Virus record (IMG/VR): IMGVR_UViG_3300035703_000005
Location: 1-64,000 of that record
DNA length: 64,000 nucleotides
Strand: one strand, 5' to 3'
Below are positions 8,144 to 44,611 of the stretch, one piece after another (within the stretch, counting starts at the first letter, position 1; the number at the start of each line of letters is the position of its first letter). Made by a program: the position numbers and the translations under genes. A model generated the notes under the pieces. The model saw only the letters and a list, made by a program, of their open reading frames with translations. It made no database searches and was not told the DNA's origin.

Positions 8144-11100
8144 TTATTTGTTTCTTTTTAATTCATCAATTTCATTCTTCAATTCTTTAATTGCTTCAAT
8201 AAGTAGTGGAACAATTTTTTCATATTTTACAATCAAAATTTCTTCATCATTAAGTTTTTCCTTCTTAACCGCCTCTGGGAGAACTTCTTGGACTTGTTGT
8301 GCAGAAACACCGACTTGTGAAATACCACCCACAAATCCAAGACTAATTGCTTTTTCATTCCAATTAAATGTAAATCCACTTAATGATAGTACCTTTTGAA
8401 GCGCATTAGAAATGGTTGTTCTATTAGTCTTAAGTCTATCGTCAGACGCAGCACCAGCAAAAGCAGTAATATCTCCTCTTATATACAAATTAGATTGAGA
8501 TGCAGTATTATCTGGTAGATAGTAAATATTTGGTGAGGTATATAGAAGTTCACTTGCCGATGATCCATTATCAGAATCTACAAAGGTTAAGAAATGTGCG
8601 CTTGGTGTGGCTAACTGCCTCGATATAGTTGCAATAGTATTTGCGTTTGTCGCTGTTGTTGCAGTAGCTGCGTTTCCGTTTACATTTCCAGTCAAATTAC
8701 CCACAAAAGTCGTTGCAGTGATAATACCTGCAGCAAAACCACCTAAACCATTTCTAATAACTGCATAATTTGCAGTATTATTTGATGATCCATTCAATCC
8801 AATTGTCAAGTTTCCACTATTATCAAATGTTCCACCAGTCAGAACACCAGATGTTTGGATAGTGAATTGTAGTGATCCACTAAATTGGGTTGCGGTAACA
8901 ACTCCTGCTCTGAAATTACCAAATTGGTCACGTCTTACAATTCTATTAGCAGTATTTGCAGTATCTGTTGACCAACCTTGTAGTAAGGAAGCATTTAAGT
9001 TGGATACCTGTGTAGTAGAATTTACGGACAGTGGAGCAGTTCCTGTAGCAACTGTGGAATTAAATATTTGGGCAGTTACTTGACCAGAAGTTCCACAATT
9101 GATATTCATGTTATTTGGAGAACCTGGTGATGTAGCTCCAGGTCCAAAAGCACTGATAATACCAGCATTGGCATAAATTCCTTCACCTGTTCCAGATCCA
9201 GAAATCCAAAGTTTACTGGTAATCTGAGCGTTTGTATAAGTTGCACCAGTACCTGTAATAGCAGTAATGACACCAACATTGATGAATGCTGTTAAAGGAT
9301 CTGCTGATGAATTTCCTCTTAAGGTTCTGATCGTTGCAGTTGTAATAATTCCACTATTTACATAAGCAGTAGGAGATCCAATCCAATCAGTTACTACTTT
9401 ATTCGTACTTGTAGAAATGCCGAAAGTTCCTGAACTATAATTTAAATTTGTTCCACTTAGAGCAGTTATAACACCTGTATTAACATGTGCTGTCGGAGTT
9501 GCAAATCTAAGTTCAGCTCTCATTCCTTGAATAAAAGCATCAGTTCCTCTGTATGTTGTAATTGTAGCTGCAACACCAGAAAGTGAAATAATATTTGAAT
9601 TTTGTGATGTAAAGTTAGAACAAGTACCGATGGAACTGTTAAATGAAGTTATAATACCATTTGTGATGAAGGCATCTTTATATACAGTTATAGTTTGAAC
9701 GCCAATTTGCGTTCCGATGAGTTCCGTGGATGTAATTACTCCAGCATTACATACCAAGTTTCCAACATTTAGAGTCCCAGCAACAGTTGAAATTCCAGAA
9801 AATACGGAATTAAATGAATTTTCAAATCTTACTGTTGCATTTGTAAATGTAGCTGCAGTTCCCGTAACTTCCATTCTCTGGAATTGGGCAATAGAATCAG
9901 CATTAGTATGTCTAATTGTATAATTGGAACTACCAGACCCAATGTAGACTGTTTGATTATTAATCGTAATCTCATCGAATACGGCTTGTCCAATTGCTTG
10001 GTTTCCAGCAAATGTAACTGCACCACCTACATAAAGATTTTTAACTTTAACTGTTCCATTAACTTCTAAAGCATCTCTAAAGTTGTAGATACCAGAACTT
10101 TGACCAATACCAACTTTATCTAAAACTAAGAAATCACTATCCTTTTCTCTGGAAATATTTCCCCATCTACGCCAATCACCATCTACATAAGCATGTCCAA
10201 TATATCCACCAGGTTCTGGTAGTGCTAGAAGTGAAATATCTCCAGATTTCTTTGGATCGATAGGAGTAGAAATTCCAACCGTTATTAATTTTGGTTGAGA
10301 AGCAACACCCTTAATATAAAGATCTCTAGTTTCTAATCCATCTTCAGAAGAGTTGGTAACTTTTTGTGAGAAGTTTACTGGGCCATAAAACTGTGATGTT
10401 TGATTACTGTTTTCTCCACCTTCAACAGTAATTCTTTCTTTTACAACAAGATCATCAAATACTCCACTATTTCTCTTGGTAATTTCTGCATCCGCATCAT
10501 CGCCAAAGAAAGTTACGATAGGAGCTTCAATTACTTCTTCTTCACCTGTAGCTCCGTTAATCTTAGTAGCTCCAGAGAAGAATTCTCCCCTATCGTTCAT
10601 TCCAGTGTAAACGACCGTTCCACCATCCTGTTCTCTAGCTTGAGAGACTAAGACCTCATCATTACTTAACACCCTGTCTTGGACCACTGGCAATCCAGTA
10701 GAATAGTTTCCGGGTCCATATCCAAGATACTCAAATGTATGGCCAGAAGCACGAAGAATTGAGTGTCTACGAACCTCCATTGGGAGAATTCTTATTTTTC
10801 TGATTACAGATCCAGCAACAGCTTCTACTTTTGCTGTAGAAAATTGTCCCCTATTTACTGTAATAGTATTTACAACAGGATTATTGGAAACCCTTACAAT
10901 TTCAGCATTAACAATGAGATAATCACCCTTTGAGATACCTCCAGTCGAAGACAGAGTGAATGTTGATGTAGTTTTACTTATATCTGATGCAAGAGTTGTA
11001 GTAATTCCAGCATAGATGTAACTTCCTCTTCCTCCAATATTTTCTTCTCCAGCTCCAAGGGCTCTTCCATTCGCAGAATATCCATATTTGTGAACACTGA

Positions 11101-15934: not shown

Positions 15935-16007
15935 AGCCCCCGCTCGGAATCGAACCGAGAATCTTCCGCTTACAAGGCGGATGCAGTAACCGTTATGCTA
16001 CAAGGGC
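15935..16007 (-). tRNA. trnT: tRNA-Thr(UGU)
   Basis: GCCCTTG acceptor; TCCGC-CT-TGT-AA-GCGGA anticodon arm; CTCGG-TTCGATT-CCGAG T arm; no encoded CCA. Confidence 0.95.
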
Positions 16008-16020
16008 GTAAAAGATTGGA

Positions 16021-16500
16021 TTATTTCCGATCAAACTGGAAAAGGCCGTGATATGAACCCCAGACTTGTTCATCTGTTTCTGGATTAAATCCTTTATCTA
16101 CAACATTATAATAGTTATTTCCAAGAAAAGCTTCTGTAACTAGATATGTATTTTTTCCAGATTTTTCAATAAAACATTCTTTACATGTATTTTGCCCGTG
16201 AAATTCATCTTTCTCTTCATCGTAAGTAAAGATGACATTACATCCTTCTAGGTAAGGTTGTTCTTCTGTATCCTTATAAGATTTTAGAATAATGTTTCCA
16301 TTTTCTTCGATGACTTCAATAATAGATTGTCTATATGGATTTTGATCCATTATATATTTTTGAGTCACTCTAAATTTATTGTCTGAAATTTTTGTGTGGT
16401 TAACTTCAATTAATGCAAATTCCCTAGGCATATAAAATGCTTGTTTTTGGTTATCAAAATAACCTTCGAAATAAGAAATAAATTTAGATGTAAGGGTCAT
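16021..16500 (-). CDS. cpeT: CpeT/CpcT-family phycobiliprotein lyase
   Basis: EGYFDNQKQA, NPYRQ, EGCNVIF, C..C, D.GFNPETDEQVWGS.HG.F.F.R. Confidence 0.9.
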   Translation of the reverse strand: MTLTSKFISYFEGYFDNQKQAFYMPREFALIEVNHTKISDNKFRVTQKYIMDQNPYRQSIIEVIEENGNIILKSYKDTEEQPYLEGCNVIFTYDEEKDEFHGQNTCKECFIEKSGKNTYLVTEAFLGNNYYNVVDKGFNPETDEQVWGSYHGLFQFDRK

Positions 16501-16520
16501 TTTAAAAAATATTTTTGATT

Positions 16521-16528
16521 TATTTATA
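16521..16528 (-). promoter_or_regulatory. T4 late promoter TATAAATA upstream of cpeT
   Basis: Exact consensus 20 nt upstream of the cpeT ATG. Confidence 0.7.
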
Positions 16529-16531
16529 CAA

Positions 16532-16616
16532 TAGGAACGGGGAGACTTGAACTCCCACGAGCATAATGCCCAACTGATTTTAAGTCAGGTGCGTCTACCG
16601 ATTCCGCCACGCTCCC
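16532..16616 (-). tRNA. trnL: tRNA-Leu(UAA)
   Basis: Long variable arm; CCTGA-CT-TAA-AA-TCAG anticodon arm; GGGAG-TTCAAGT-CTCCC T arm. Confidence 0.95.
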
Positions 16617-16626
16617 ATGTTTTAGG

Positions 16627-16698
16627 TAGGACTGCAGGGAATTGAACCCCGTTCACTCCGTTATAAGCAGAGGGCTTTAACCAATAAGCAACAGTCCC
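16627..16698 (-). tRNA. trnI: tRNA-Ile(UAU)
   Basis: GGGACTG/CAGTCCT acceptor; CTCTG-CT-TAT-AA-CGGAG anticodon arm; CGGGG-TTCAATT-CCCTG T arm. Confidence 0.9.
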
Positions 16699-41682: not shown

Positions 41683-41810
41683 TTTTGCGCCCCCTTTACA
41701 AACTTAACTCCACGATATGTTTCGTTATGTTGCTGAGGTTGCTGTTGCGCCTGTTGTTGACGGCGAACTTCGGTGTCATATGCGACACCGCGATATACAA
41801 CTTGTGACAT
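41679..41810 (-). CDS. DUF4278-like peptide (43 aa), not in ORF track
   Basis: MSQVVYRGVAYDTEVRRQQQAQQQPQQHNETYRGVKFVKGAQK with two YRGV motifs; AAGGAG Shine-Dalgarno. Confidence 0.8.
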   Translation of the reverse strand: MSQVVYRGVAYDTEVRRQQQAQQQPQQHNETYRGVKFVKGAQK

Positions 41811-41842: not shown

Positions 41843-41927
41843 CGTTCCTTCAGTCGGCTTTTGCGTCCCATTGGGGATGAACGATCCGTTCCGAGTCGGC
41901 TTACTTCCGTCGCATTAGCGATGAACG
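41843..41927 (-). ncRNA. Tandem glutamine-riboswitch-like RNA (glnA / Downstream-peptide family)
   Basis: Two 41-nt units closed by CGUUC/GAACG, each with a 4-bp hairpin; GGAAGUAAG and UGAAG junction motifs. Confidence 0.7.
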
Positions 41928-44368: not shown

Positions 44369-44611
44369 CTAAGTAGGATTATCCTCCTGATCCTTAAGTA
44401 AACGACTAACAATTTGTTCTCTTCCGTCCATCATAGCTACAGTGTAAATAGAAGATCTCATATATCTTTTAATTTTTTTATATTGTTTTCTCACTTCTTT
44501 GATTGCATCAAGATTCATTTCAACATTCATATTACCAGAAATTACTTTTTTTTCTTCTTCTCTGGTGGTTGATAGTTCCACATCTTTGGATTGATCGTTC
44601 CTTCCGTCCAT
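44369..44611 (-). CDS. Hypothetical protein
   Basis: ORF track. Confidence 0.6.
   Translation of the reverse strand: MDGRNDQSKDVELSTTREEEKKVISGNMNVEMNLDAIKEVRKQYKKIKRYMRSSIYTVAMMDGREQIVSRLLKDQEDNPT

Follow-up and report, generated by a model that had tools for sequence, protein, structure and literature searches.

The leader of a small gene in a T4-like cyanophage genome contains two glutamine-riboswitch aptamer units that, judging from comparison with 116 distinct relatives from viral contigs, fold one inside the other and share a helix instead of sitting side by side. The two 41-nt units, joined by GAU, are found on the minus strand at positions 41927-41843 of the window, namely the whole 64,000-nt stretch of DNA that was analysed (positions 1 to 64,000 of IMG/VR record IMGVR_UViG_3300035703_000005). 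The comparative evidence strongly supports a nested pairing scheme, in which the split of the E-loop between the units is conserved, the two CCGACU segments pair with each other and covary, forming P3, and the ligand-dependent 'linchpin' pair is Watson-Crick only across units. The element is described as a canonical glutamine-I three-way junction whose P3 is capped by a second junction lacking an E-loop. The observation made in the first-pass annotation, i.e. two 41-nt glutamine-aptamer-like units with compensatory hairpin stems, each carrying only one half of the E-loop junction, is correct in every letter. Its interpretation is supported only in part: the RNA is of the glutamine-aptamer type and the nested fold that it put forward does rebuild one complete glnA-type aptamer, but the comparative data offer no evidence for a switch between mutually exclusive tandem and nested folds, the alternative suggestion of a ligand-variant aptamer is not supported, and the statement that CCGACU has no visible partner is wrong, the partner being the other CCGACU.

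Sequence, genomic setting and covariance-model scores

Read 5' to 3' on the minus strand, unit 1 (41927-41887) begins with CGUUC (41927-41923) and an A, followed by the P2a hairpin UCGC-UAAU-GCGA (41921-41910), linker 1 CGG (41909-41907), the E-loop 5' strand AAGUA (41906-41902), segment S1, AGCCGACU (41901-41894), CG and GAACG (41891-41887). After GAU (41886-41884), unit 2 (41883-41843) comprises CGUUC (41883-41879), an A, the P2b hairpin UCCC-CAAU-GGGA (41877-41866), linker 2 CGC (41865-41863) followed by AAA (the whole linker region spanning 41865-41860), segment S2, AGCCGACU (41859-41852), the E-loop 3' strand GAAG (41851-41848) and GAACG (41847-41843), with C41842 as the next base. Thus, unit 1 carries AAGUA and no GAAG, and unit 2 carries GAAG and no AGUA.

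A search with the Rfam glutamine covariance model (RF01739), which had been named as a check of the first-pass annotation, gave 38.6 bits for the gene-proximal unit 2 (gathering score, 35; E 8.2e-05 for the whole 64-kb window against all families) and 26.2 bits, below gathering, for the promoter-proximal unit 1 (E 0.0017 in a 501-nt scan, and 2e-4 for the whole 249-kb genome), although the model assumes a hairpin P3, which neither unit has. With the glutamine-II (Downstream-peptide motif) model RF01704 only the 5' half of the gene-proximal unit matched, weakly, at 18.2 bits (required score, 33), and no P2-type helix is found immediately 3' of either GAACG, so that the element does not satisfy the definition of an H-type pseudoknot glutamine-II RNA. 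In named cultured cyanophages the units score between 28.9 and 33.5 bits, also below the RF01739 gathering score, and one unit is called glutamine-II (S-PM2, locus L413, 663-764; S-CREM1, locus L414, 600-698; S-SRM01, locus L412, 600-651; L numbers denote the loci from viral contigs and named phages used for comparison). Standard annotation will therefore miss or mislabel this class.

The window belongs to a complete virus record of 248,835 bp. The neighbouring genes, as read from the ORF translations, are phoH, thyX and speD of T4-like cyanomyoviruses, and the nearest named relatives are Synechococcus phages S-SRM01, DSL-LC02, S-PM2 and S-CREM1. A cluster of three tRNA genes (63.4, 57.4 and 54.0 bits), as is usual in T4-like cyanophages, is present at 15935-16698 on the minus strand. 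The DNA sequencing runs that hold the sequence are freshwater, lake, wetland and subsurface metagenomes, and the nearest isolate, S-SRM01, comes from a reservoir, which points to a freshwater cyanomyovirus, while most of the related loci are viral metagenome contigs. A search for RNA-seq runs returned only DNA metagenomes and two metatranscriptomes holding 4% of the words.

The element sits in a compact cassette. A strong sigma-70-type promoter, with TTGACT at 41967-41962, an 18-nt spacer and TATAAT at 41943-41938 (11 of 12 matches), lies 11 nt upstream, with a predicted transcript start about 4 nt before the aptamer, and the same promoter and leader recur in relatives L140, L198 and L243. The −10 box lies inside a short palindrome (41950-41931), GAGG-TATAATAAT-CCTC in the window and GGTC-TATAAT-GACC in relatives, with equivalent sites in L015, L027, L033, L140 and others. 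Downstream of the aptamers, the Shine-Dalgarno (SD) sequence AAGGAG (41823-41818) is found 7 nt before the ATG at 41810 of ORF1 (41810-41679), which encodes 43 residues with two YRGV motifs and is DUF4278-like (IF17-like), on the basis of a match to PF14105 that remains below the cut-off (E 3.6e-4) and of one to phrog_5049 (E 4.5e-15). The same gene follows the element in relatives. DUF4278 is the domain shared with IF17, the glutamine synthetase inactivating factor whose mRNA is controlled by glutamine riboswitches in cyanobacteria. ORF2 (41682-41581; 33 residues) has no family match in Pfam or PHROGs, its start overlaps the ORF1 stop (ATGA), and it is probably translationally coupled; an ORF matching it in length (102 nt), position and 4-nt overlap, features that do not by themselves establish sequence similarity, is annotated in S-SRM01. 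An intrinsic terminator (41574-41547), with an 8-bp stem at 41574-41555 followed by a U-run, closes the cassette.

Conservation and covariation across the two units

Three pattern scans of viral contigs yielded 116 distinct sequences with the same plan, and in every one the first unit has AAGUA but no GAAG and the second has GAAG but no AGUA, a recurrence showing that the asymmetric layout of the window is more than chance. S-PM2 (upstream of S-PM2p190) and S-CREM1 (annotated 'riboswitch glnA') carry compact versions like that of the window. Complete side-by-side doublets, in which each unit has its own E-loop and P3 hairpin, also exist (L068 and L090), so that the asymmetry is a property of this class and not of all tandems. 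However, the sequences were gathered with a pattern that fixes the junction module and they are related, so that the counts overstate the number of independent events. Other junction-like or terminal-module-like matches within the window (9696-9716 and 44596-44604) lie in coding sequence and are due to chance. A scan of contigs from cellular genomes with the junction pattern gave almost only chance hits, and just two short contigs carried the real element, one assigned to a Prochlorococcus single-cell genome and one to an Acetobacteraceae MAG, both presumed to be phage DNA from their size and content. In 301 genomes of the family of that Prochlorococcus genome the pattern was found only in that same contig, a result that does not show absence from hosts.

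In the window S1 and S2 form six Watson-Crick pairs and two A.C mismatches. In relatives the two segments change together, as shown by AGUCG/CGACU (38 sequences), AGCCGACU/AGCCGACU, AGCCGACG/CGCCGACU, AGCCGACA/UGCCGACU, GGACGACG/CGCCGCCC, AGUCA/UGACU, AGACAACU/AGUUGACU, GGCUAACG/CGUU(G)AGCU and, in S-SRM01, CGCCGACU/AGCCGACG. In an alignment of 42 compact doublets the outermost pair (columns 34:99) is AU in 30, GC in 8 and GU in 3 sequences, and the innermost pair (columns 42:90) is GC in 18, UA in 7 and AU in 5, with no unpaired cell. The 8-bp versions of P3 keep two symmetric C.A/A.C mismatches at positions 3 and 6 in most sequences, which may reflect A+.C wobble pairs, a tertiary motif or tuned stability, whereas the 5-bp versions are fully Watson-Crick. 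Mini-hairpins inside each unit (AG-CCGA-CU, as aligned by Rfam, or CCG-ACU-CGG) were ruled out, because they are not conserved in relatives with other S sequences. AAGUA lies directly 5' of S1 and GAAG directly 3' of S2, which is the arrangement of the crystallised glutamine-I RNA (Ren et al. 2015, as described in later work), where the E-loop 23-GAAGUAA-29/50-UGAAGC-55 flanks P3. Thus, S1:S2 is P3 and the single E-loop is assembled from the two units. The outer aptamer matches the crystallised construct base for base in the linker, E-loop and P3 ends, with 41909-41902 corresponding to positions 21-28 and 41851-41843 to positions 51-59.

In glutamine-I the third linker base (G23) forms a critical, ligand-promoted Watson-Crick pair with the base just after P1 (C60), and glutamine-II has the equivalent pair C19:G41. 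In the window the within-unit combinations are G.G and C.C, while the cross-unit ones are G41907:C41842 and C41863:G41886. Over the 116 doublets, the pair between linker 1 and the base after the second GAACG is Watson-Crick in 116/116 (C:G 89, G:C 27), and that between linker 2 and the base after the first GAACG in 114/116 (C:G 101, G:C 12, G.U 1, C.A 2), as compared with 86/116 for each of the two within-unit pairs. All four state combinations occur (CGCG, GGCC, GCGC, CCGG). A scan enriched for G in linker 2, with the partner position left free, returned C in 12 and U in 1 of 13 sequences. The compensatory flips are found in several different P3 and platform backgrounds. On the 42-sequence alignment, both cross-unit linchpins are paired in 42/42 with 12 double changes each, whereas scoring the same alignment as two independent units leaves both within-unit linchpins unpaired in 16 of 42 sequences (26/42 paired). 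In the nested structure 94.6% of the cells are paired and 0 of 500 shuffles reach the observed covariation. All four pairs of P2a covary and P2b also covaries. The P1 strands, instead, are invariant (the first CGUUC in 42/42 sequences) and cannot themselves distinguish nested from tandem, so that the case rests on P3 and on two single-pair covariations. Linker 1 is covalently continuous with P2a and the first CGUUC, and its partner base with the last GAACG. The outer P1 must therefore be formed by the first CGUUC and the last GAACG, and the inner helix by the first GAACG and the second CGUUC. RNAalifold predicts the same consensus unaided, and nearest-neighbour energies for the window favour the nested fold (−17.7 kcal/mol) over the tandem one (−13.0 kcal/mol), although P3, with its two A.C mismatches, is marginal in this model and adding it costs +1.1 kcal/mol.

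Many relatives that at first appear to be single aptamers followed by a gene, or elements lacking the first CGUUCA, are the same nested design with a whole small ORF (about 45-65 residues) inside a P2 loop (S-SRM01, L412, 600-850; L140, L198, L243, L121-L173). In the former, an ORF of 140-195 nt lies inside P2b, with the start codon in the P2b 5' strand (for example UCCCAUGG) and the complementary strand (CCAUGGGA) at the end of the ORF, followed by linker 2, S2, GAAG and GAACG. In S-SRM01 the 55-residue ORF runs through the 3' half of the aptamer and stops in the anti-SD. In the latter, the first CGUUCA is found about 190-230 nt upstream, right after the promoter, and the ORF sits inside P2a and ends with GGA-CGC-AAG-UAA within linker 1 and the E-loop. 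The long-range P2 strands covary (UCUUAUGG/CCAUAAGA, UCCUAU/AUAGGA, UCCAAU/AUUGGA, UCUCAU/AUGAGA, CCCC/GGGG), and these ORF-holding forms obey the cross-unit linchpin rule, with 62 of 62 for the outer pair. Coupling between translation of the embedded ORF and aptamer folding is suggested. The element of the window is the compact form, with both P2 helices as short hairpins.

Proposed nested aptamer and expression platform

The explanation that we favour, with moderate confidence, is that the leader RNA is a nested double glutamine aptamer. The outer aptamer would be a canonical glutamine-I three-way junction, with P1 formed by 41927-41923 and 41847-41843, P2a at 41921-41910, linker CGG, the E-loop formed by 41906-41902 and 41851-41848, and P3 by 41901-41894 and 41859-41852. 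P3 is not closed by a loop, but is capped by a second three-way junction that uses the same helix from the other end, with the same strand order (CGUUC-A-P2b-linker-[AAA]-P3-[CG]-GAACG), P1' formed by 41891-41887 and 41883-41879 and closed by a loop (GAU in the window, 3-6 nt in the class) that contains the linchpin base, P2b at 41877-41866, linker CGC-AAA and no E-loop. In this view, the two junctions are related by a rough dyad through P3, which would also explain why S1 and S2 look like copies of one near-palindrome. The positions that contact glutamine (C1, G2, G22, C58 and G59 equivalents) are invariant in both units, and each junction has its own long-range linchpin pair. Glutamine-II also lacks an E-loop and still binds glutamine in an identical pocket, and its RNA exchanged strands between molecules in the crystal and works as a two-piece aptamer, so that such swapping is chemically reasonable.

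As for the output, without glutamine the segment CUCUUUAA (41842-41835) would pair as an anti-SD with UUAAGGAG (41825-41818), the SD region. This hairpin is found in the minimum-free-energy fold of the window, and its sequence is conserved in the lineage of the window, but it does not covary. C41842 is both the first base of the anti-SD and the outer linchpin partner of G41907. Glutamine binding would close the outer P1 and take C41842 into the linchpin pair, weakening the hairpin and switching on translation of the DUF4278/IF17-like ORF and, probably, of the coupled ORF2. This mechanism, with an anti-SD starting at the linchpin C, was postulated for Synechocystis gifB by Klahn et al. (2018). 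In other lineages, with G after the second GAACG (e.g. L014, L027, L166), the platform differs: CU[G/A]AAG (the end of P3 plus the E-loop 3' strand) is complementary to CUU[C/U]AG immediately before the SD, 20-45 nt downstream of the aptamer, and C occurs only when the E-loop base is G (11 of 30 G-type sequences against 0 of 20 A-type), which points to the same logic. Overall, the sequence anatomy and the covariation of P2a, P2b, P3 and both cross-unit linchpins are demonstrated by the present analysis, whereas glutamine binding at both sites, the ON logic and any cooperativity, by which closing the inner helix would free the first CGUUC for the outer P1, are inferred from sequence and by analogy. 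With regard to cooperativity, tandem glutamine aptamers were reported not to bind cooperatively in vitro (Ames & Breaker 2011, as cited in later work).

A nested architecture with a shared P3 could explain a long-puzzling 'tandem' arrangement of this riboswitch, and would account for the spacing of the units by only 3-6 nt, for the lack of half of the E-loop in each and for the poor covariance-model scores in phages. It would be a rare natural case of one aptamer inserted in a helix of another copy of itself, and the ORF-in-P2 relatives suggest a new way of coupling translation and aptamer folding. Biologically, it would place a phage-encoded IF17-like small protein under direct control of the glutamine level of the host during infection. 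A further-reaching view, possible but somewhat less likely than not, is that cyanophages carry a previously undescribed riboswitch architecture, with two glutamine-binding three-way junctions fused head-to-head through one shared P3 as an intramolecular 'domain swap' of the tandem aptamers, and with P2 loops that can hold entire small ORFs, the start codon being in the P2 strand. One RNA could then give a sharpened, cooperative response to glutamine and regulate an embedded and a downstream ORF in opposite directions.

Alternative readings and related RNAs

Among the alternatives, the one that survives best, although unlikely, is that the nested fold is correct but only one junction senses glutamine, most likely the outer one, the inner hairpin, P2b and linker being a structural cap or a remnant of the duplication or insertion that built the element. 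Only the outer junction has an E-loop, the 3-nt loop closing P1' may crowd the inner pocket, two relatives have a C.A inner linchpin, and the reported lack of cooperativity of tandem aptamers would also be in line with this view. However, the inner linchpin covaries in at least three backgrounds, the contact nucleotides of the inner unit are invariant, and glutamine-II binds glutamine without an E-loop. It is less likely still that, as suggested in the first-pass annotation, the RNA toggles between tandem and nested folds, for example with the tandem fold forming first during transcription and glutamine driving strand exchange. The repeated P1 strands make both pairings available, the first CGUUC and the first GAACG may pair before the 3' half has been transcribed, and the energy gap is modest, but no conserved feature is specific to the tandem fold and an ordinary anti-SD/SD hairpin already explains the output. 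Two independent side-by-side aptamers, acting additively or pseudo-cooperatively, appear more doubtful. Rfam aligns each unit separately, reviews list 157 doublets as pseudo-cooperative systems, the fold is possible by sequence, and with S1:S2 added it would resemble, in our own topological comparison, glutamine-II-type pseudoknots. However, neither unit is a self-sufficient aptamer, having half an E-loop and no P3 of its own, the within-unit linchpins are non-pairs (G.G, C.C) in 30 of 116 relatives, the window included, the continuity of GAAG with the second GAACG and of AAGUA with linker 1 and P2a means that the canonical junction geometry needs the first CGUUC paired to the second GAACG, and truly complete doublets (L068 and L090) look different. 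That the module is mainly a recombination or cassette boundary of the hyperplastic region of the phage and not a working riboswitch is very unlikely, since, although it flanks many different small ORFs, holds ORFs inside it and has its −10 box in a small palindrome, the covariation in P2a, P2b, P3 and the linchpins is not expected for a DNA-level site, the ligand-contact bases are invariant, and the downstream gene family is the one tied to glutamine riboswitches in cyanobacteria.

Tandem glutamine riboswitches have been known since 2010 (Weinberg 2010; Ames & Breaker 2011; Sherlock 2022, with 157 doublets and 4 triplets), and glutamine riboswitches of cyanophages are known too. Full-text literature searches found no description of a nested, P3-sharing fold or of ORFs within P2, although, as the original work of Ames & Breaker lay outside the texts searched, a prior description cannot be excluded. 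With glutamine-I (RF01739) the element shares P1 CGUUC/GAACG with the A bulge, the covarying P2 hairpin, linker CG-G/C, an E-loop of AAGUA and GAAG flanking P3, present once and only in the nested fold, the linchpin to the base after P1, fulfilled across but not within units, the inferred translational ON logic through an anti-SD beginning at the linchpin C, and the association with DUF4278/IF17-like genes. It differs in that P3 is not a hairpin but opens at its far end into a second junction that reuses it. As in the reported tandems, two glutamine aptamer sequences lie a few nucleotides apart in front of one gene, but here the units are incomplete on their own and interlock through the shared P3, the split E-loop and the cross-unit linchpins. 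Glutamine-II (RF01704; PDB 6QN3) has the same binding pocket and CGUUCA...CGCA core and, like the inner junction, no E-loop, but it is an H-type pseudoknot of marine picocyanobacteria, whereas the inner junction is a three-way junction whose P1 is closed by a short loop. In the tandem glycine riboswitch two homologous aptamers also precede a single expression platform and make inter-aptamer contacts, but they are complete and dock side by side through tertiary contacts, and are neither nested nor share a helix. Finally, the −10 palindrome is reminiscent of the promoter-early stem-loop (PeSL) cassettes of T4-type phages, in which an early-type promoter in a small palindrome precedes small ORFs in hyperplastic regions in a modular arrangement; those are DNA-level shuffling and promoter units, whereas the element described here shows RNA base-pair covariation.
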